A DNA stretch of 11,468 nucleotides from Paramoeba atlantica (GCA_977017575.1 CDRNVI010000216.1:1-11468), one strand, 5' to 3'. Positions 55 to 11,468 are shown, counted from the stretch's first letter. The notes: generated from the letters alone by a model not told the origin. Numbers and translations: made by a program.

Positions 55-138
55 CCTTGATAGCAATAAAATTGGAGATGAAGGAGCGAGAGAGATTGGT
101 AAGTCCCTCTCAACAAATGCAACACTTCAAACACTTGA
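55..138 (+). CDS. 84-nt exon encoding one RI-type (NLRC3-like) leucine-rich repeat
   Basis: Acceptor ...ccaacacacacAG at 53-54 follows a polypyrimidine tract; donor GT at 139. Phase 2/2. Translation: LDSNKIGDEGAREIGKSLSTNATLQTL, a 28-aa LRR period. Confidence 0.9.
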
Positions 139-393
139 GTTTTGCTTTCATTTTGTTTTCTCTCTTTATTTCTGAATATTGTGTTTTTGTCTCTTTTTTC
201 TTTTTTTCTCTTTTCTCATTCTTTTTTCTCTCTTCTTTTCTTCTCTTCTTCTCTTTTCTCTTTTCTTCTCTTTTCTTCTTCTCTTTCTTCTTCTCTTTCT
301 CTTCTCTCTCTCTCTTCTCTCTTCTTTCTTTCCCTCTCTCCTCTTTTCTCTTCCTCCTCTCTTTTTCTCCTTTTCTTTTTCCAACACACACAG

Positions 394-477
394 CCTTTTT
401 AACAATAAAATTGGAGATGAAGGAGCGAGAGAGATTGGTAAGTCCCTCTCAACAAATGCAACACTTCAAACACTTCA
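394..477 (+). CDS. 84-nt exon encoding one RI-type leucine-rich repeat
   Basis: Acceptor AG at 392-393, donor GT at 478, phase 2/2. Translation: LFNNKIGDEGAREIGKSLSTNATLQTL. Confidence 0.9.
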
Positions 478-708
478 GTTTTGCTTTCATTTTGTTTTCT
501 CTCTTTATTTCTGAATATTGTGGTTTTTGTCTCTTTTTTCTTTTTTTCTCTTTTCTCATTCTTTTTTCTCTCTTCTTTTCTTCTTTCTCTTTTCTTCTTC
601 TTCTCTCTCTTCTTCTCTCTTCTTCTCTCTCTCTCTCTCTTTCTTTTTTCTTTTTTCTTTTTTCTTTCCTTTTTTTTCTTTTCTCTTTATTAATTTCTTT
701 ATTGACAG

Positions 709-781
709 TGTTGATGACAATCCTTTTTGCCGTTCTCACCCACAATTGATGAAGGATATTCAAAGTCTACTCACTCCAGAG
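709..781 (+). CDS. Linker exon capping the LRR array (HVDDNPFCRSHPQLMKDIQSLLTPE)
   Basis: Acceptor attgacAG at 707-708 and donor GT at 782. It starts in phase 2, matching the LRR exons, and ends in phase 0, matching the exon at 949. xDDNP resembles a terminal LRR turn. Confidence 0.7.
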
Positions 782-948
782 GTTTTCAATTTGAAAAATT
801 TTTATCAAAGAAAAACACATCCCATCCAACAACACACAAATTCAAAAACAAAAGACAATGAAAATATAAGAAAACAAAAGAAAACAAAAGAAGAAAATCA
901 AAAAGAAATAATTTTTTTTTTTTTGTTTTCTCAAATATCTTTTTGTAG

Positions 949-1360
949 AGAATATTTCAGAAACAAGTTGAAGCTGCTGAGCAGGGGAATGGAAATGCAC
1001 AGTATAATGTAGGGCGGCGGTATGAGAATGGCGGTAAGGGTGTAGATAAAGATGAGGAGAAGGCATTTGAATGGTATTGTAAGGCTGCTGAGCAGGGGAA
1101 TGGAAATGCACAGTATAATGTAGGGCGGCGGTATGAGAATGGCGGTAAGGGTGTAGCTAAAGATGAGAAGAAGGCTTTTGAATGGTATCGTAAGGCTGCT
1201 GAGCAGGGAAATGCAAGGGCGCAATATGACTTAAGCTTGATGTATCAGAATGGTGGCAAAGGTGCAGCCAAGCAGCAAGATTGGAGTGCTGCACTTAAAT
1301 GGTGTCAGTTGAGTGCAAAAGCAGACTATGGGTTAGCAAAGGGTCAATTACGTCAATGGC
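949..1360 (+). CDS. SEL1-like repeats (3 plus a capping helix), missed by the ORF track
   Basis: The frame is open from the acceptor TAG at 946-948. It reads RIFQKQVE AAEQGNGNAQYNVGRRYENGGKGVDKDEEKAFEWYCK AAEQGNGNAQYNVGRRYENGGKGVAKDEKKAFEWYRK AAEQGNARAQYDLSLMYQNGGKG, matching the SEL1 consensus AAEQG..AQ..LG..Y..G.GV..D..KA..WY.K. Units start at 973, 1084 and 1195 (111-nt period). An alternative acceptor at 960 keeps the same phase. Confidence 0.92.
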
Positions 1361-2212
1361 AAAAACAGATAATCAAATTAGTGAGTGTTTCACCACAAGA
1401 TAGTCCCTGGCAGCAGCAGAGGTTGAAAGCACTTCCTCCTCCTGCTGGATGGGTGAAGAAAAAAGAGAGTATTATTGCTGAGGAGGAAGGGAGATCTGGT
1501 GGTGGTGGGGTTAGTTTTGATGTGTCTGACAGCAGTAGTAGTAGTGGAGGATACTACAGCAGTGGAGGTGATGTTGAAACAGCAGTAATTGAAGCAGAAA
1601 ATTTGGGATTGGGTTCTTCTTCTAATGCATCTGGCCAGTTGCAAGCTTCATTAAGCGCACATCAATTAATCTGTTTATTGGGGTCACAGTATGGTGAACT
1701 TATTGAGTGTGTCAAAGCATTAGGGGGGGTGAGGGGGGGTGAGGGGGGGCAAAGTGTTGATGGTGATGGTGGTGCTGCCAATCTCCCCCCCCCCATTGTT
1801 GCAAGTGGATACTCACAGTGCAGCCTTGGCAGAGCTCTATGGCTTAGTGAAGCAGTCTATCAATTTAGATGTTCATGTTTACAGTGCATTGATAAAGGTC
1901 TTAGAATATTGTGTGCCAGTGTATCAATTGCAGCAGCAGCAGCAGCAGCGAGCAGCAACAACAACAACAACAACAGGGTGTGATGATAAGGTTGAGAATG
2001 AGGCTCTTTTTTTGCCATCATCACGTTTAAAGCATGCAGCCTTGTTAGTGCAACAAGCTATTGATGTAGTAGGACATGCCCATTGGTTGCTGCGTCATCA
2101 AGTGTTGGGGAAGTTGCATATATTGGAAGATGAATATGCCACAGCCATCAGCAGCAGCAGCAGCAGCAGTGATTGTGCCAGTGTTGCTGTGTTGGGTGAA
2201 GGGTATTACAGC

Positions 2213-3620
2213 TTACCAGTTACTGTTGCACGTCAGTTATTGTGTGTGAATGAAACTGGAAAGGAAGTCAAAACGAATCAAGCAGGGTCTCATGCTGTGG
2301 CAGCTTTAAATGGGGTGCATTATAAGCCTAACAGCAAAGCAGAGTCTCCCATTAATCCTGGGAAAGAAGCTGCTGTTAGCAGTTTAATGCAGTTAATTGC
2401 GGGTCAATTCTTAGCAGCAGCTCCCAGTACATTATTGAGTGTGAGTGGAGTGTCTATTCAAAAAAAAGGTGAAGAAGAGGAGAAATGTATTGTGACAACA
2501 ATGGCTGGTAACTTGGTACAAGGTGGGTTAACAATTACTGGGATGTGCTTTAAAGACTTCATTGAGTGCCGTGAAGCGCTTAGGGTGTGGGAATCACGGT
2601 TATCAATGGATGCCATGGTTGCTTTGTTGCAGAATGTTCAAGAAGATTTTGTTCATGCCTTGACGGTGGCAAAACAACAGTACCCAGATGTATTTGATGT
2701 ATTTGATTTAAGTGTTGAGGCAAACCGAACAGCTTTGAGTGAGGGGTTACGCCATGCTTTTGAGCAGGTATGTGCAGGTAAAGCAGTTGAGGTGCAATTG
2801 TGATATTGCCAATTCTTCTGACAGGCCCGAGGCCAATCGCCGCAATGCCTTTCGTGGATTGTTTGAAAGTTTCTTGCGTGATGGCGGTGGCATGGTGGAT
2901 GGTTTATGTGCACTGTTAGGGGTGATCTGTCAATACCCCATATTGATGGCAAGGCAAGAGATTGCTGGGTTGTTACAACAATTCAAACATTCCAAACGAT
3001 TATTTAAGTTGTTCCCTAACACACCATTAGAAACAGCATTAACAATCATGCCACAGTTATTAACAAAGCATTACTTGGACACTGAAGCAATGAGTTTCCT
3101 GTGGTTAGGGTTATTGCTCACTCTACCTTGTGACAGCAAGTTTGATAATTTCATGTTGCAGTTAGACTATGATACAAATAAGCAATTGAAACACTGTCGA
3201 ATTGTGGCGATTGACAATGATTTGAGTTTGAAGATGCTGTTTAGTCTTAATGAGCATGGAAAGTTATCACTTGAGCTAAAAAACTTGCTGCTGGTGTTGC
3301 CTGAGTTGATGGATTTGCCAATATGCCCGATTGTACGGAAGCACTGTTTATCACTGTCATCTGAGGGATGGTATTTGACGTGGCTTAGTTTGCTTGCTAA
3401 GCATGATAGTGATTATCAGCAGTGGTTGCAACAAGGTACAGTTAGTGTAAAAGCACTGCAAGCCATTGATATTCCAGTTCAGTTACCACAACAAGTTTGG
3501 TTATTTATCAAAGCACAGTAGTGTTTGTTACACAATATCTTGCAAACCAATGCTGATATCACCTTAGGGCAGTGTTTTGCACATCTTTATCCATTGGTTG
3601 ACAGTGCTTATCAAGGATTA
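2213..3620 (+). CDS. Atypical protein-kinase-like domain 1 (long insert; broken by a frameshift and a TAG)
   Basis: Motifs: HYK (Lys 2324), NPGKE (Glu 2366), catalytic-loop-like DSKFDN (3132-3149) and IDND (3210-3221). It aligns by eye to domain 2. Confidence 0.75.
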
Positions 3621-3944
3621 AGCCAACTGGATAGCCTGTTGCTGCCTGGTCCATTAGCAACGGAATTTAATCTGTACCAATTCTTTAAAATGGGTGGCAG
3701 TTGCCCAATAGAAAGGTTATTGAAAGAATGGCCAGTTGAATTAGAACAAGGGCAGTGTGCAGATGATACAAGCCCAATGGTCAGTGCCACTTCTCAGGTG
3801 ATGAGCGAGGTGAGGCAATTGAATTGGGCATTGATACCACAACATCAGCAATGGCCAGTGGTTGAAGCATTGTCATTGTTACCAGGGTTAACCGATTGGC
3901 AAGGTGTTACTGAAGAGGATATCAAGCCACATTTTCAAGGGCGG

Positions 3945-5180
3945 TTTCGTGAGGCTGTCACACAGGGTCGTCCCTTTGTGGCACAACGGTTATTGGACTT
4001 AGGTGCACAAGTCAGCCTCCCAGATGAAAGTCAAAACACAGCCTTGCATCAATTGTGTGCAAGTTATTTGAATTGCCCAGAAGACGGCAAGACAGGTCTC
4101 AATATCTCTTTTCTTATTTTTTTTCTTATTAATTTTTTATATTATCTAAATGAGAGTCACAAATCATGGAGAATAATGAATATTTCTGATATTTTGAGGT
4201 TGTTAAAAACTTGAGAGTGGTGTAGTGAGAGTTGTGTGTTTGTGTGAATTCTTTTTTTTTTTCTTTTTTTTTTTTATTTGTTTTATGTTCTTCAAGATTT
4301 TATGGAATGGAGTTTAATATGATGAGGTATTTTGAAGGATGCAATTACTGATTGTTTATTTTTATTTTTTTTTCTTTTTTTTTTTTTTCCTTTTTTTTTT
4401 TTCCTTTTTTTTTTTCTTTTTTATTATTATTTGTTTATGTTCTTCAAGATTTTATGGAATGGAGTTTTATATAATGAGGTATTTTGAAGGGTCTAATTAC
4501 TGAATGTTTATTTTTATTCTTTTTTTTTTTCTTTTCTTTTTTCTTTTTCTTTTTCTTTTTTTTTTTTTTAAAAAATTTGTTGTGTTTCTTCAAAAGATTT
4601 TGAAAGGGGATATGAGATGTTAATAATAATAAAAAAGTATTTGTTCAAAGGTTTTTTTTGATTGATTGGGTTTTTTTTGTTTTGTTTTATTATTATTTAT
4701 TATTATTATTTTCTTTTTCTGTTCTTCTTTCAATATTTTTAAACTATTGATTTTTTCGAAAGTGTGTGTGGTGTTCCACTTTGTGACATTGTTTCTTATG
4801 AATTCTTTTTTAATTTTTCTTTTTTTTTCCCCTCTTATTACTCTTTTTTAATTTTTCTTTTTTCTTTTTCTGATCAGCTATGTTTATGGGTTATGTGTTA
4901 TTGGGTCATCATACATGCCAACCCAACCAATACAATGCATCTGGCTATACACCATTATTGCAGTGGGTGAATGTAACACCGGAGCCAGAACAACTAACAC
5001 CAGCACAATTGGACAGTGCATTGAAATTACTAGAAGCTTTGATAATGTATGGAGCAAACCTTGAAGCCAAAGATGCATTTAAGCATGAGACAGCATTAGA
5101 TAAGACAATGAAACAGGGTCGAGAGAAGTGGCACTGGTTTGGAGTGTTAATCAAGAAAGGGGCTGGGGTGCATGCTAATG
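3945..5180 (+). CDS. Ankyrin repeats, split by intron 4096-4877
   Basis: AVTQGRPFVAQRLLDLGAQVSLPDESQNTALHQLC; NASGYTPLL; LLEALIMYGANLEAKDAFKHETALD; VLIKKGAGVHA. These show the typical TPLH/TALH and LL..GA.v motifs. Confidence 0.8.
4096..4877 (+). other. 782-nt AT-rich GT-AG intron
   Basis: gacaG|GTctc ... polypyrimidine tract tgatcAG|ctatg. The phase-1 join gives DGKT-A-MFMGYV and restores the frame into ORF 4880-5521. Composition changes sharply at both ends. Confidence 0.75.
4275..4517. repeat. Imperfect ~90-nt direct repeat (period ~152 nt) inside the intron
   Basis: ttcaagattttatggaatggagttt...atgaggtattttgaagg...aattactga occurs at ~4275-4365 and ~4429-4517, with a decayed third trace at ~4575-4610. 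Confidence 0.85.
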
Positions 5181-5428
5181 GTGAAATGATTGTTAAGCAT
5201 GCCTACAATGAGTTGAGGAGGAGGAGGGCATTAGCCCAGCAGCAGCAGCAACAGCAGCCAACATTGCAAGTGATATTATCACAGTTAGCTGAGCGTAACT
5301 TGAGTGTGGCCTGGGGATTGAGTCAACAGGTATGGCAGCAGCAGCAGGAAGCCAGCAGTGGCAAGCAGCAGCAGAGCAAAAAATTTACTGTGGTTGTGGT
5401 GCATGGTAGTCACTGTGGCAATGTGGTG

Positions 5429-6423
5429 TTACCAGAAATGATAGCCAAGCAATTGTTAACAGGGAAAAGAGTGTTTATACACAAGGTGAGACCACAGAAG
5501 TATATGGTCAGCGGGTGGTGAAAGCAATTCAACACAATCAAGCCAACTGGCATGTCAAAGAGAACCCAGAGATGCCAGGGGTTGAAATGGCGGTGGGGGC
5601 ATTGAGTAAGTTGTTATTTGGTGAACACACTGCACCCAATGAAGTGTTTTCATTTTTTGATGCCAAAGGTGCTTCCTATCCAGTACTGATTTCACAGACA
5701 GTGGCAGGGGAGAACTTACAAACAGTATTAAATGGTGATAAGAAGAAAAGACAGGTTGGTGCTACCTTACGCCAGTTGCACCCACAATACACTTGTGAGC
5801 AAATCCTGTTAGCAATGTTAGTACACCCAGAAGATGGTAAACCAGATAACTATCAATTATTGCCAGTGACAACCACAAACTGCTCCCCCTGCCCCCCCTC
5901 CAAATTTGGCAAATCATCATCATCAGCAGCAGTCATACAGCAGTATCGGATTGTGGGGGTTGACAATGATCATGCATTTGTGAAACCAGTGATTATGGAA
6001 AAAGGCCATCGCAAATTGCAAGTCAAATGTGTGTTATTTTGTTTGGACAACATGCGGCAGCCAGTCCATCCAGCAGTAAGACAACGCTTGCTTCACCTTG
6101 ATCCAGTTGCATTCTTAGAAAGTTGGTTAGACCAGTTAATAGCCTATCATGAATGCTCAATGAGCTTATTTGATAAGAAAGCACGTCAACAGTTGTTTAA
6201 AGTGAAAGTGGATTTGAAACAGTTAGCCCACAAAGTGGCCCTCCGTGAAGCGCGTGAGCGCTTGCCAGTGGTGGTGACAGTGCCATTTCGTGATGGGGCA
6301 ATAACTGAGCTATGGGATTGGTTGGTGCGGTTGCAACAGGTGCTACGTGATAATCCAATGATAACCCACTTGCAGTTATTAAAAAAAATCACTTCAGCAT
6401 TGGGGATTGTGTATGATGAAGTG
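5429..6423 (+). CDS. Atypical protein-kinase-like domain 2
   Basis: Motifs: HVK (Lys 5557), MPGVE (Glu 5584), LAMLVHPEDGKPDNY (Asp 5833, Asn 5848; compare DLKPEN of Ser/Thr kinases) and IVGVDNDHAF (Asp 5962, the DFG position). Confidence 0.82.
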
Positions 6424-6849
6424 TTTGAGGTGTATGAAGAGCCAGAAGAAGTGGCTGCGCGGTTTCATGAGGTGGCTAACACCCATTACTCCACAGCAAT
6501 AGCTGGGCGTTATGCAACACTCACCACCAGTCGCCAAGCCTTGCAAGCAGCTGGGTTCTCAGACAAAGACCAAAAGGTGTTGTTAGAAGACAGTGATAAG
6601 GGAGCAGCAAGTTTTACTCCACAGTGCGCATTGATGCAATTACGTCAAGGGGTAGAGCAGAAAGCAAACTTGTTAGCATGTGTGGCAGCGTTAGCCGATG
6701 GCAATGGATCAGCATTTCAGAAAATATTATCTGAGCAGGCCAAAGAAGATGTGGTTAATCGTTTGGACTTTGGCAAGATGTTATTAGTGGGCGGCAGCAA
6801 GCAACCAGATGAGGCAAAACAAAAGGCAATATTAAAACTGGTTATCACT

Positions 6850-7400
6850 GAACAAATTGCATTTCACACATTGACAATTCATCATTGTGCAGTATTGACA
6901 GATGAGACTCTCACAGCATTACTGAAAAATGCTCCAGAGCTCAGTCGTTTGACATTGGTAGATTGTCCACAACTCACCAGTAAGTTGAGTGGAGTGCTTG
7001 AAAAGCACACACCATATCTGACAACATTGACACTGCGACAGTTACCCAAGTTAGAAGGATTAGGTAATCAAACCAAAGGAAAAGCAAATCAACCTACTGT
7101 CCATTATAACCCAATTAATCTGTCACACTTACGATGGGTGAATGTCAGTGATAATCTTCAATTAAGTAGCATTACTATTCAATCACAAGTATTGATGTTG
7201 GCAACCTGCAAGCACAACCCAATCCTCACGAAATTGACATTGTTTTGTGAAGAGCTAAAGGCATTAGATGTGAGTGGTTGTTTGCAATTGAGTGATAATG
7301 ACTTACACCAAACATTTGAGTTCTATCAAATGCTGCCAAAACTGAACATAGATAAATGTCAAGCAATTAATGCTGAGTTGTGGCAGTGTATGGGTTATAT
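6850..7400 (+). CDS. Cysteine-containing (AMN1/FBXL-type) leucine-rich repeats
   Basis: LTIHHCAVLTDETL, LSRLTLVDCPQLT, LTTLTLRQLPKL, LKALDVSGCLQLSDNDL, LPKLNIDKCQAIN. Confidence 0.8.
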
Positions 7401-7458
7401 CACTCAACGAACAGGATCACATTTTCCAAATTGGAATCTGAAAATGTGAAAACAATCT

Positions 7459-7800
7459 GTGTTACCATTGTTGCCATATGCATCAGATACATTTGTGCAA
7501 CTGGATATGGAGGCAATTGAATCAAATCAAGTGGGAATAATGATGAAATTGGTAGCATCTAATCCGAATGTACACACCATATTCATGACTTTGTCACCAA
7601 AGAATATTGCTGCTGCACTGACACAACTGCTAATCTTATTGCAAACCAATCACAACATTGCGGCATTGTGTATTACTGGAGTGTTGTTGGACACTGTGAT
7701 GGTTGAACAAGTGATAACAGTCCTTGCACAATGTGAAAACATACACACAGTGGCATTGATAGTTGATAACATCCAATTAGCAATTGAACAGTTTCAACAA
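7459..7800 (+). CDS. Degenerate RI-like LRRs in frame after the TGA at 7447
   Basis: LVASNPNVHTI, LLQTNHNIAALCI and VLAQCENIHTVAL recur at ~28-aa spacing. Confidence 0.45.
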
Positions 7801-8266
7801 GTAACACTCCAAAAACAGCAGCAGTTAACACAACAGGTGATGGTAAATGGGGTAAATATTACACCATTATTATTGCAAGAAAAAGGTCACACTCCAAAAT
7901 TTATATTACCAATCATTCCTGTTGATATCTCCAAGGAGGAACAAGCAATGAAGGTGGATGTGCTTGCTTTAGCCATTATGCAACATGATGATGTGTTATC
8001 CCCTCTACACCAATCAGCAGTGAATATGTTAGAATTATTCAGTGCGAGTGGGGAATTGTCAAAACACAAACAACAAGTTGCTCGTCTATTATCTGGTAAA
8101 AATCCAACCCTGTTAACTGTGCAACAAGCGCAAAGCAGCCTCTGAATTAATAATACCACACACACATCCTCTTCAAACACTATAAAAATCAAAGTTTTCA
8201 TGAGTGGGCAAAGTAATATTCCTTTTGGTTTCTTCTCACTCTCAAAGAGGAGGACATATGTCTGAG

Positions 8267-8395
8267 GTAGTTTCTCTTTCTCTTTTCTCTTTCTTAAAAT
8301 TAATTTTATCTGAAATTGATAAATTCTCTTTCTTTCCTTTCTATTCTTATTTTCTCTTTTCTCTTTTCTCTTTTCTATCTCTTGTCTTCTTTTAG
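8267..8395 (+). other. Candidate GT-AG intron downstream of the apparent stop
   Basis: gag|GTAGTT ... T/C-rich ... cttttAG|atctc. Confidence 0.4.
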
Positions 8396-8750
8396 ATCTC
8401 AAGCCAGAAACAAGAAGCACAGAGAGAGAGAGAGTAAGAGGAAAAAAGGGAGAAAGAGAGAGTGAGGTGAATTTCCAAGTGTCATTCGGAGAATGATGCT
8501 TTCCTCATATCTGATCATATGTTTTCTGGCAAGTGTTTGTATTTTATTTTATTTAATATTAAATAATATAATGAATTTTTTATATTTCTATTCTAATAAA
8601 TTTTAATTTATTCTTTTTTCGATTTGATTCTATTCTTTTTTCATTATAAATAATATGAGAATGAATTTTTTTGTTGAAAGATTATCAGTAGAGTTTGGGT
8701 TGTCTCTCTTTTGAAGCAAAGAAGCTGTTTATGATATTATCTATTTAACG

Positions 8751-9753
8751 ATGGGACAAAGAATTATTCCTCAAGCTCAATTAGCAACTTTGGTTCTCTT
8801 TTTCTTTTTCTTTTTCTTTTCATTTTTCATTCTCTCTTTCTTTTCTCTCTTCTTCCCAAAAATATGTTAACAATTCCCAATTCCATATACATAGTGTCGA
8901 AGAACTGTGTGTGGAGGAGAGATTTCTTCAGATCTTGTGGAAATTATCAGAAATCAATTATTGATTATAGTTGGGCAATATGTTGAGAGAGTGAAACTCA
9001 TTTCACTGGAATGGCAGGCAACAAAAAGGTGGCTCAACTTTCCTTCCAACACACACACACACTGTTTGATTCGAAAAAAATCTGATATCTCATTTACACT
9101 TCAATATTCACAAACTCTCCAAACACTCTTTTACTTTCACTATTCTTCTTTCTTTGTCTGAAAGAGGTAAAAAAGAAAAATTGTCCATCAATGTGTGGTA
9201 TGAATCAACTTCAGTCTCTTTTTCCTTCTCTCTCTACCACTCCTCCAACCCCCCCTTCTCATCCTCTCTAACTCTTCAAGATTGAATTTTCTTTTGATGT
9301 TGTTATCTTTTCCATTCTTGTCTTGGGTTTTTTTTTCTTTTTCTTTTTTTTTATATTTTTTTTTCTTTTTTTTTTCTTTTTTCTTTCTTTTTATATTTCT
9401 CTTTTCTTTTTTCTCTTTTCTCTGTTTTCTTCTCTTTTTTCTTTTCTCTTCTTTTTCTTCTTATTGATTGATTTTTTTTTTTTTTTGTTTTGTTTTTTTG
9501 GAATTCTCTTTTCTGTAAAGTCCCTTTTCCCTTTTATTTATATTTTTATTTCTCTTTTTTTCTCTTTTCCTTTCTCACCTTTTCCTCTCCTCTTTAGGAA
9601 ATTCCTCTTGTTTTGATTTTCTAACTCTAAGGACTTTATTTTCTGGAGATGCAATGGGTTTGGACAACAAAAGAGGTGTTGTTTCTTTAACAAAAAAAAA
9701 TTGGGAAGAGTGTGTTCCTTCTCTTTTTCTTTTACACAACATCCCATTACTTG
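8751..9753 (+). CDS. Putative second spliced gene of unknown function (exons 8751-8792, 8895-9028, 9165-9213, 9281-9326, 9598-9753; 3' part unresolved)
   Basis: Five non-T-rich islands join through GT-AG introns in consistent phases (0, 2, 0, 1) with no stop. Translation: MGQRIIPQAQLATLCRRTVCGGEISSDLVEIIRNQLLIIVGQYVERVKLISLEWQATKRGKKEKLSINVWYESTSIEFSFDVVIFSILVLGNSSCFDFLTLRTLFSGDAMGLDNKRGVVSLTKKNWEECVPSLFLLHNIPLL. There is no firm homology call. Confidence 0.35.
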
Positions 9754-10524
9754 GTTTTTTTATTTTTTTATTTTTTATTTATTTATTTATTTATTAAGAT
9801 TTTAATCACAACTTGAAATTTGATTTAAATTTTTGATTTTATTTATTATTTAAAAATTTTACTCTGTAATTTTTGGTATTGTTTTTTGTTTAGCACTTCT
9901 CTCTCTTTCTTATTCTAAATAAGTAATAGTAGAATTCCACAAAATGACTTCACACACCTTTGCATTGCAATGAAAGAATTTTTTTAAGAGAAAGAAATTG
10001 TTTTGGATCATAGTTTATTTGTTTATTTGTGATTAATGCCAAGAGGATTGATGTTTGCAAGTGTTTGGAAAAGGGAAAGAAGAGAGAAAGAGAAGACAAC
10101 ATCAATTTTTACTTGGTTTTTTATTTTTTATTTTCTTTCTTTCTCTTTTTCAGATGAGTTGAGCGTCTCTTTTTACTAAAACTATTAATGCCAAGTTTTC
10201 GAAAGGAGCGTCTTGGTGGGAAAAGCAGCTCTCTTTTTTTTTTTTGTTGGAATTTTGATATTGTTGATGTGCTTCAACACACAAAGGATTGTGATGACTT
10301 CTCTCTATCTTGTGGGGTGATGTTGAATTTTACATATTGCTTTTGTTGGATATCTTGTGGGGTGGGGTATTAGAGTGTTGGTGGTTTCCCACACATTTTG
10401 TTTTCATGTTTGTTTTCCTTTGTTCTCTTCCCCTTTTCCCTTCCTCTCCTTCCTTCCTTTTTAACACTAATCTTTTCTCTTTTCTCTCCAGAGTTTTTCT
10501 CTCTCTTTGTGTGTTTGTTGGGGT

Positions 10525-11468
10525 TTTAGGGTTTAGGGTTTAGGGTTTAGGGTTTAGGGTTTAGGGTTTAGGGTTTAGGGTTTAGGGTTTAGGGTTTAGG
10601 GTTTAGGGTTTAGGGTTTAGGGTTTAGGGTTTAGGGTTTAGGGTTTAGGGTTTAGGGTTTAGGGTTTAGGGTTTAGGGTTTAGGGTTTAGGGTTTAGGGT
10701 TTAGGGTTTAGGGTTTAGGGTTTAGGGTTTAGGGTTTAGGGTTTAGGGTTTAGGGTTTAGGGTTTAGGGTTTAGGGTTTAGGGTTTAGGGTTTAGGGTTT
10801 AGGGTTTAGGGTTTAGGGTTTAGGGTTTAGGGTTTAGGGTTTAGGGTTTAGGGTTTAGGGTTTAGGGTTTAGGGTTTAGGGTTTAGGGTTTAGGGTTTAG
10901 GGTTTAGGGTTTAGGGTTTAGGGTTTAGGGTTTAGGGTTTAGGGTTTAGGGTTTAGGGTTTAGGGTTTAGGGTTTAGGGTTTAGGGTTTAGGGTTTAGGG
11001 TTTAGGGTTTAGGGTTTAGGGTTTAGGGTTTAGGGTTTAGGGTTTAGGGTTTAGGGTTTAGGGTTTAGGGTTTAGGGTTTAGGGTTTAGGGTTTAGGGTT
11101 TAGGGTTTAGGGTTTAGGGTTTAGGGTTTAGGGTTTAGGGTTTAGGGTTTAGGGTTTAGGGTTTAGGGTTTAGGGTTTAGGGTTTAGGGTTTAGGGTTTA
11201 GGGTTTAGGGTTTAGGGTTTAGGGTTTAGGGTTTAGGGTTTAGGGTTTAGGGTTTAGGGTTTAGGGTTTAGGGTTTAGGGTTTAGGGTTTAGGGTTTAGG
11301 GTTTAGGGTTTAGGGTTTAGGGTTTAGGGTTTAGGGTTTAGGGTTTAGGGTTTAGGGTTTAGGGTTTAGGGTTTAGGGTTTAGGGTTTAGGGTTTAGGGT
11401 TTAGGGTTTAGGGTTTAGGGTTTAGGGTTTAGGGTTTAGGGTTTAGGGTTTAGGGTTTAGGGTTTAGG
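10525..11468 (+). repeat. Telomeric array (TTTAGGG)n, 134 full units plus TTTAGG
   Basis: Perfect 7-nt periodicity runs to the end of the window. The G-rich strand points toward the end, as expected for a right chromosome end. Confidence 0.98.

Follow-up and report, generated by a model that had tools for sequence, protein, structure and literature searches.

The window analysed here is a stretch of 11,468 nucleotides (nt) from Paramoeba atlantica (GCA_977017575.1, CDRNVI010000216.1:1-11468), in which a scan for open reading frames (ORFs) revealed a plus-strand chain of changing frames from 949 to 8145. Preceded by small exons encoding leucine-rich repeats (LRR), this chain forms the body of a multidomain gene whose parts follow each other in the order LRR, Sel1, kinase-like domain A, ankyrin repeats (ANK), kinase-like domain B and again LRR (Table 1). 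Coding-like DNA displayed a GC content of ~44-46 %, the flanks and an internal block at 4096-4877 being at 25-30 %. Very probably, the locus is a decayed subtelomeric copy of a bacterium-derived tandem-kinase gene that was eukaryotised in the host.

The original prediction, made by a model from this sequence alone, had described a single gene with this domain order at 2.4 kb from the telomere. The order was borne out by Pfam, AlphaFold2 (AF2), Foldseek and homologue comparison, and the unity of the gene by blocks 949-4095 and 4878-8145, which are contiguous in every bacterial homologue. Its two atypical kinase domains also stood, given their mutual homology, the kinase fold of domain B and the catalytic motifs kept in both; the architecture, which it had not recognised as a named family, has no Pfam or NCBIfam model. 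The announced length of more than 2300 amino acids (aa) was too high, as the window holds ~2,220 codons; the LRR array extends upstream of position 1. The telomere array starts 2,380 nt past the stop codon, and the orientation of its G-rich TTTAGGG strand is as at a true chromosome end. Rfam gave no match on the window and Pfam no NACHT or NB-ARC match in any window ORF, nor was another signalling hub seen.

Table 1. Features of the window, in order of position
Feature	Position	Strand	Evidence and remarks
LRR exon 1, 84 nt, 28 codons, RNI-type LDSNKIGDEGAREIGKSLSTNATLQTL	55-138	+	acacacacag before, gttttg after; Pfam LRR_6 E 0.0046, below gathering score
CT-rich GT-AG intron between LRR exons	139-393	+	exon-plus-intron unit tandemly duplicated, period ~339 nt
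LRR exon 2, 84 nt, near copy of exon 1	394-477	+	LRR_6 E 0.0036
CT-rich GT-AG intron	478-708	+	splice-site inspection
Last host-type exon VDDNPFCRSHPQLMKDIQSLLTPE, 73 nt	709-781	+	closes on a whole codon before gttttc; without Pfam match
Putative intron from host LRR exons to bacterium-derived body	782-948	+	GT..AG; one open frame kept on predicted splicing
Three Sel1 repeats	949-1300	+	Pfam Sel1 2.2e-27; aligns to the P0153/P0154 Sel1 region directly after the WD40 propeller
Linker with AGGGGGGGTG repeat and 10-C run at 1785-1794	1301-1795	+	frame 1 to frame 2 (lesion 1)
Kinase-like domain A	1796-3518	+	Lys 2324-2326 (HYK), D-S-K-F-D-N 3132-3149, IDND Asp 3213-3215
Lesion 2, 2-nt loss	near 2798-2801	+	tblastn frame 2 to 3; read contigs carry +TG after 2798
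Lesion 3, in-frame TAG at bacterial Trp	3519-3521	+	A3520G (TGG) in other read contigs; window-like A also in X1
End of kinase-like domain A and first ankyrin-like repeats	3522-4095	+	Ank_4 E 0.0035; Ank matches in P0153:1230-1480
T-rich GT-AG intron in ankyrin region, 782 nt	4096-4877	+	152-nt internal duplication at 4251-4567
Ankyrin-like repeats and linker	4878-5514	+	1-nt loss near 5476, frame 2 to frame 1 (lesion 4)
Kinase-like domain B	5515-6504	+	Lys 5557-5559, catalytic Asp 5833-5835, Asn 5848-5850, IDND Asp 5962-5964
FBXL-like cysteine-containing LRR solenoid	6802-7446	+	AF2 pLDDT 88.5; Foldseek FBXL2, KDM2B, SKP2, RNH1
Lesion 5, in-frame TGA at bacterial Trp	7447-7449	+	alignment to bacterial homologue
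C-terminal domain, probably RNI-like LRR, and stop TGA 8143-8145	7450-8145	+	homology to P0152-P0154 and P0001
Non-coding subtelomeric flank	8146-10524		without long ORFs; 8146-9374 lies within the 86 % match (window 6592-9374) to host contig L077
Telomere array (TTTAGGG) x 134.9	10525-11468	+	100 % matches; G-strand runs to window end

Bacterial relatives and probable transfer to the host

The closest sampled relatives of the window core were four paralogues, with 78-82 % aa identity over kinase B, on OZ220716.1, a co-sampled gammaproteobacterial metagenome-assembled genome (MAG) whose sequence record is identical to contig ctg4025c of ENA assembly ERZ24900291. Identity peaked at 82 %, with L007 in the tree alignment (kinase B-plus) and with L006 for kinase B alone. 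In blastn, the uninterrupted ORFs of L006 and L007 displayed 75-77 % nt identity to the window; that of L006 matched window 2024-4081 at 77 % and 4886-7276 at 75 %, with a distance of only 19 nt in the bacterium between the sites corresponding to 4081 and 4886. Proteins P0152-P0154 of the MAG (2,390-2,548 aa, uninterrupted) comprise WD40 and Sel1 regions followed by the core, and tblastn aligned them colinearly with the window from ~952 to 8133-8190 via frames 1, 2, 3, 2 and 1. A bacterial gene encoding WD40, Sel1, kinase A, ankyrin, kinase B and LRR parts, both kinases resembling type II phosphatidylinositol 4-kinase (PI4KII), is the likely source of window 949-8190. Giant proteins of protist-associated intracellular bacteria form the large family from which the window core was captured.

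With the bacterial tandem-kinase family (P0152/P0153/P0154, P0001) the window shares the colinear Sel1, kinase A, ANK, kinase B and LRR series and the same invariant Lys, Asp, Asn and Asp. It differs in its nuclear and subtelomeric position, its predicted spliceosomal intron, its LRR exons in place of a WD40 propeller and its extra Sel1 repeats; furthermore, it lacks the last ~56-140 residues by which bacterial homologues extend beyond the window stop, and it is broken five times. Bacterial members are single uninterrupted ORFs, which was not found for the window (telomere, GT-AG introns, one internal intron, five lesions); the window copy is a derivative and not a bacterial member.

An exhaustive HMMER search with ORF 5515-7449 as query gathered 975 cluster representatives, most of them 1,000-5,000 aa long with a second kinase-like stretch ~500 residues upstream. 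The 150 matches listed displayed phmmer E-values from 1e-219 to 1e-28 and mostly had this second upstream stretch as well. The ends of the family proteins were variable (WD40, Sel1, OTU, Ras/Roc, TPR, U-box, ANK). Scanning of bacterial species genomes yielded 70 family loci in gammaproteobacterial MAGs, Chlamydiae, Dependentiae, Paracaedibacteraceae (Paracaedibacter symbiosus), Holosporales, Caedibacter and Amoebophilus, and the family is present in at least four bacterial phyla. Lineages carrying it are known protist symbionts. There is no Pfam or NCBIfam model for the family; sources label its members as hypothetical, WD40 or ankyrin repeat proteins, and no description of it was found in the literature on the accessions or on PI4KII-like symbiont effectors. 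A protein-homologue search with ORF 5515-7449 retrieved only the bacterial fragment P0005 and no intact host C-terminal ORF.

The gene for P0001 is located in a prophage- and insertion sequence (IS)-rich part of a 2.45-Mb chromosome, and that for P0004 adjoins murG-ftsW and pilMNOQ. OZ220716.1 harbored at least seven giant tandem-kinase paralogues, L001, L006, L008, L009 and L010 at ~1.25-1.36 Mb, L007 at 2.06 Mb and L013 at 1.79 Mb. Several are grouped within ~110 kb among phage tail, lysozyme, terminase, HicB, IS66 and Y1 transposase genes, which suggests phage- or IS-linked amplification. A bacterial-style gene with WD40, Sel1 and core (L076, GC ~50 %, 70-73 % nt identity to the window) was found in a different sample (ENA ERZ26167977), so that related symbionts occur elsewhere.

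In a tree of 54 rows, the window was placed in a six-row clade (SH-aLRT 99) with L006, L007, L008, L009 and the host locus L003, outside of which fell further OZ220716.1 paralogues and other gammaproteobacterial MAGs. A careful tree of 12 rows agreed on the window clade with support 94/97. As the eukaryotic copy is nested in the paralogue radiation of one bacterium, transfer from the bacterium to the host nucleus would be the direction. L003 grouped with L008/L009, and an approximately unbiased (AU) test rejected a clade of window and L003 (p 0.005; the grouping was named after the tree had been seen); its placement apart from the window hints at more than one transfer. The dN/dS ratio was 0.14 against L007 and ~0.13 on the window branch (three-point decomposition). 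Such low values point to constraint during most of the history, in bacterium or host, and to recent decay.

The two kinase-like domains

Kinases A and B are homologous to each other (BLASTP 5e-06; hhalign 99.8 %, E 1.5e-28). In an alignment of kinase B from the window and 31 homologues, Lys15, Asp107 and Asp150 were invariant and Glu19, Asn112, Asn151 and Asp152 nearly so, the motifs being hhK-x-x-PE, NPEDGKPDN and IDNDHAF. For kinase A, residues D286, K288, D290 and N291 were invariant and D313 nearly so; the window has them all and keeps the D-x-K-x-D-N and IDND motifs. The putative catalytic Lys, Asp, Asn and Asp are conserved across both domains.

The AlphaFold model of kinase B (pLDDT 89.9) had its best structural match in PI4KIIalpha, with Z 15.7 for 4pla and 15.6 for 4hnd (VIA-align, 229 residues), the next unrelated fold classes reaching Z 11.5 at most. 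Further matches were actin-fragmin kinase (Z 11.5), CtkA (Z 10.9) and MavQ (Z 9.7), and ATM/PI3K-like kinases, CotH and PI4KIIIbeta were also among the lesser ones. Foldseek agreed on PI4KII (probability 1.0), as did Atlas features. Kinase B is accordingly modelled with a bilobal kinase fold closest to that of type II PI4-kinase. It shares this fold with human PI4KIIalpha (4pla/4hnd) and plant PI4Kgamma but differs from type II PI4-kinases by an identity of only ~12 % and by the missing Pfam PI3_PI4_kinase match: up to E 1, the kinase parts matched nothing in Pfam (PF00454, PI3_PI4_kinase, included) or NCBIfam. A sequence search of the PDB with the kinase profile returned only noise. Pkinase had no Pfam match in the window, and structures of eukaryotic protein kinases (ePK) aligned with a TM of only ~0.25. 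Presumably, the catalytic-loop and IDNG-type motifs of PI4KIIalpha resemble NPEDGKPDN and IDNDHAF. Among the related folds, actin-fragmin kinase and CtkA are protein kinases.

The conserved catalytic residues and the PI4KII-like fold argue for active kinases in the bacteria. The bacterial protein may be a secreted effector aimed at the host, in which the kinases would act on host phosphoinositides or proteins and the repeat modules would provide targeting. We infer this from the ankyrin, LRR and variable OTU, U-box, Ras and WD40 modules together with the restriction to intracellular lineages.

The ankyrin signal between both kinases was weak in the window (Pfam Ank_4 E 0.0035), and P0153 displayed a weak Ank_4 at that position; more distant homologues had Ank_2 between both kinase domains. 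At the C-terminal end, LRR_6 families were Atlas feature neighbours of 7459-8142, which is a lead only.

Host-type exons, probable intron gain and decay

Neither L003 nor any bacterial copy contained block 4096-4877. Its removal restored the frame and exact colinearity, with zero codons gained or lost, the joint ...PEDGKT-G|CT-ATG... having the same codon count as bacterial ...PDSKTVTLMSY... By this arithmetic, the block is predicted to be a gained intron of spliceosomal type and the sole intron among the internal breaks of the bacterium-derived body. The original prediction had attributed these breaks to splicing and lesions; splicing stood for 4096-4877, and the other five proved to be lesions. 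The tandem duplication of 152 nt within the intron displayed 89 % matches (Tandem Repeats Finder, TRF) and lies between long T-runs. Origin from an introner or transposon was considered and discarded, there being no terminal inverted repeats and the CAG shared at the ends being too short. The read comparison covered 1650-7600, with 4245-4876 passed over as repeats; a contig of run X3 stopped at 4094 with 77 unplaced letters.

Upstream of the core, the LRR exons directly displayed a period of 28 codons and the consensus NxIGDEGA; their translations (27 aa each) scored 17.4-17.7 bits, with E ~0.004, against a cut-off of 23.4 for LRR_6 (PF13516). The gtttt donor motif is common to the 782 donor and both LRR introns. 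Bacterial homology began at 952-955, a few bases past a polypyrimidine-AG acceptor at 947-948, and this start is also the point where WD40 gives way to Sel1 in the bacterial protein. Spliced on paper, 55-138, 394-477, 709-781 and 949 onwards form a single open frame; agreement of the frame across 782-948 had a one in three chance. The upstream array, with one LRR per exon, would thus be spliced in frame onto the Sel1 exon, giving a chimeric LRR and tandem-kinase gene in which host-style exons apparently replaced the bacterial WD40 head.

The Sel1 match (PF08238) reached 94.9 bits against a gathering cut-off of 30.7. TRF resolved the array at 973-1268 into a 111-nt tandem unit (2.2 copies at 96 %, 2.7 at 87 %), whose duplication gave rise to two of the three repeats, and Pfam found only one Sel1 match in the nearest bacterial protein, P0153. 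In the linker behind it, 1722-1794 consists of AGGGGGGGTG x 2.8 and the 10-C run; in other copies, 15 nt are deleted here and the number of C differs by one, and this spot is hypervariable and prone to frameshifts.

Further copies were found in the same assembly and in reads. In L077 (128-3533), LRR exon and intron (85-89 % identity) are directly joined to window 5474-5873 (95 %) and followed by window 6592-9374 (86 %), including 1.2 kb of non-coding flank; L077 is a truncated paralogous locus. Its left junction coincides with the frameshift site at window 5476. Read contigs from four runs of the organism displayed 90-99 % identity to the window with many differences, as would be expected of a multi-copy family. 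The gene belongs to a multi-copy subtelomeric family, which bears out this part of the original interpretation. A contig of run X5, probably a 2015 RNA library, joined window 2050 to ~8714 (match 8714-8745) without splice signals at the joint and is another deletion copy, possibly also a sign of transcription. Some other host copies were free of the lesions of the window, and less decayed copies may be expressed.

In L003 (7084-15827 plus flanks), ANK exons and CT-rich GT-AG introns on the minus strand correspond to the host exon-intron style. This locus displayed an uninterrupted, intron-less ORF of 2,476 aa with three kinase-like domains and, after a frameshift near 14520, an ORF of 387 aa. 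Pfam gave a weak ATG8 match for an ORF of 147 aa located just upstream of this captured gene (L003:6337-6780, minus strand).

Three frameshifts and two Trp-to-stop changes make the window copy a pseudogene; with five disabling lesions it cannot encode the proposed protein and has no role as a protein in the host, which less decayed paralogues might have. Four of them (1785, 2798, 3520 and 5476) were covered by the comparison with read contigs, which displayed frame-restoring states at all four and the window-like state at the last three. Lesion 1 is one extra C in the 10-C run, contigs of X1 and X2 having one C fewer. At lesion 4, read contigs carried +A after 5476, the window-like state being the majority in X2. 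The presence of both states in reads at 2798, 3520 and 5476 indicates real differences between copies. Both premature stops are due to a G-to-A change in the Trp codon TGG, which became TAG at 3519-3521 and TGA at 7447-7449.

Two other readings of these breaks were set aside. Tiny introns (GT..AG at 2768-2824, 3518-3567, 5486-5511 and 7446-7486) failed in frame arithmetic for three of the four, and bacterial colinearity and read variants identified all four stretches as point lesions. Reassignment of stop codons was discarded on the grounds that Trp is the aligned residue for TAG as well as for TGA, that the gene itself terminates in TGA and that TGG is found at 3520 in other copies.

Alternative explanations and known systems

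According to the preferred scenario, a giant bacterial gene would have passed from a gammaproteobacterial lineage into the host nucleus. The captured copy would have gained one spliceosomal intron (4096-4877), lost its WD40 head exactly at the domain boundary and expanded its Sel1 repeats by 111-nt tandem duplication. The gene would have spread to other host loci (truncated L077, read contigs), and the window copy would then have taken its three frameshifts and two Trp-to-stop mutations.

Several observations weigh against this scenario. Pairwise dS between the window and the nearest sampled bacterial paralogue was ~1.0, which would mean either an unsampled donor copy or an old transfer. Constraint in bacteria before the transfer could account for all of the low dN/dS, which is no proof that the host copies have a function. 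The MAG is itself only presumed to live within cells. It is also conceivable that the LRR exons are part of another gene upstream, frame 2 being open over 709-1012, and every proposed splice is a prediction from the DNA sequence. Finally, no read contig agrees with the window at 1785-1794, and this homopolymer lesion could stem from misassembly.

The strongest alternative, which we nevertheless regard as unlikely, is a promoterless fragment, dead on arrival beside an unrelated host LRR gene, with the 782-nt block as a neutral insertion and the common LRR-Sel1 frame as a coincidence. The five lesions of the window copy and the several truncated copies (L077, the contig joining 2050 to 8714) would suit it, as would frame 2 reading on past the last LRR exon to 1012 and the one-in-three chance of frame agreement across 782-948. 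However, the insertion has exact GT/AG ends and its removal restores the frame without codon loss, and homology starts near a polypyrimidine-AG acceptor right at the WD40/Sel1 boundary. The gtttt of the 782 donor is shared with both LRR introns, the link between LRR and core recurs in L077, and only two stops are present in ~2,100 codons.

That the gene is intact and functional, its lesions being assembly errors or those of another strain, is improbable. Some read contigs did display a frame-restoring state at each of the four compared lesions, and at 1785, in a homopolymer, no contig supported the window. Against this, contigs of independent runs carried window-like states at 2798, 3520 and 5476, a long-read assembly is unlikely to produce five independent errors of three kinds, and the contigs with restoring states differed at many sites (95-99 % identity), as paralogues do.

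A reverse direction, in which a bacterium acquired a protist family that then spread among symbionts, is very improbable. WD40, Sel1, ANK, LRR and PI4KII-like kinase are all typically eukaryotic and bacterial copies reside in prophage/IS regions, but host copies are nested in the paralogues of one MAG, themselves among gammaproteobacterial MAGs of unrelated samples. Moreover, the family occurs in at least four bacterial phyla, only the window copy has the intron and the host copies are decaying. An assembly chimera or contamination, with bacterial reads mis-joined to a eukaryotic chromosome end, can practically be dismissed: a donor-like bacterium was present in the same sample, but no bacterial copy exceeded ~77 % DNA identity, the gene contains a eukaryote-style intron, L077 carries gene and flank together, and four runs of the organism held 31-50 % of the words of the stretch.

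As to function in the host, the original prediction favored a protist receptor family. This did not hold for the core, which belongs to a bacterial family and is nested among the paralogues of the co-sampled gammaproteobacterium; the sensor or immune-receptor hypothesis itself was neither supported nor excluded and appears doubtful. An equally tentative idea is that the host domesticated a symbiont effector, intact paralogues being LRR-Sel1-tandem kinase-LRR chimeras that act as decoys or counter-effectors in sensing or controlling the bacterium. Under such domestication, repeated transfers would replenish the family (L003 stemming from a different bacterial paralogue lineage), which would turn over in subtelomeres. 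If intact host copies are indeed expressed, the host would have turned a symbiont effector into its own LRR-linked protein.

Captured bacterial genes in eukaryotes include the foreign genes of bdelloid rotifers, the domesticated amidase effectors of ticks and cdtB of insects. The window shares with such captures the transfer from bacterium to eukaryote, intron gain, subtelomeric residence and a mixture of intact and decayed copies. It differs in its co-sampled genome of the donor lineage, in the size and nature of the gene (6.5 kb, multidomain, effector-like) and in the apparent fusion to host LRR exons. Bacterial capture, intron gain and telomere-proximal foreign genes are known kinds of event, of which the window is a clear and not an unprecedented case. 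Its interest would lie in a well-resolved transfer from symbiont to host, with the genome of the donor lineage in the same sample, and in a eukaryotisation legible base by base, in which an intron was gained, host exons took the place of a domain, repeats multiplied, copies spread through subtelomeres and decay set in. At the same time, it points to a very large family of tandem PI4KII-like kinases in protist endosymbionts that no Pfam model covers and whose members are candidates for manipulating phosphoinositide or protein signalling in the host.

Plant tandem kinase proteins and nucleotide-binding LRR (NLR) receptors resemble the window in having repeat modules beside two kinase-like domains; the window differs by its non-ePK kinases, the lack of NACHT/NB-ARC and its bacterial origin. 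Effectors of intracellular bacteria with a phosphoinositide kinase-like fold, namely Legionella MavQ (7m7a), the N-terminal kinase of LepB and Helicobacter pylori CtkA, share an atypical kinase fold within a host-targeted bacterial protein. These were weaker structural matches than PI4KII and lack the tandem kinase pair and the ANK/LRR architecture. Clusters of LepB_N were among the Atlas feature neighbours.

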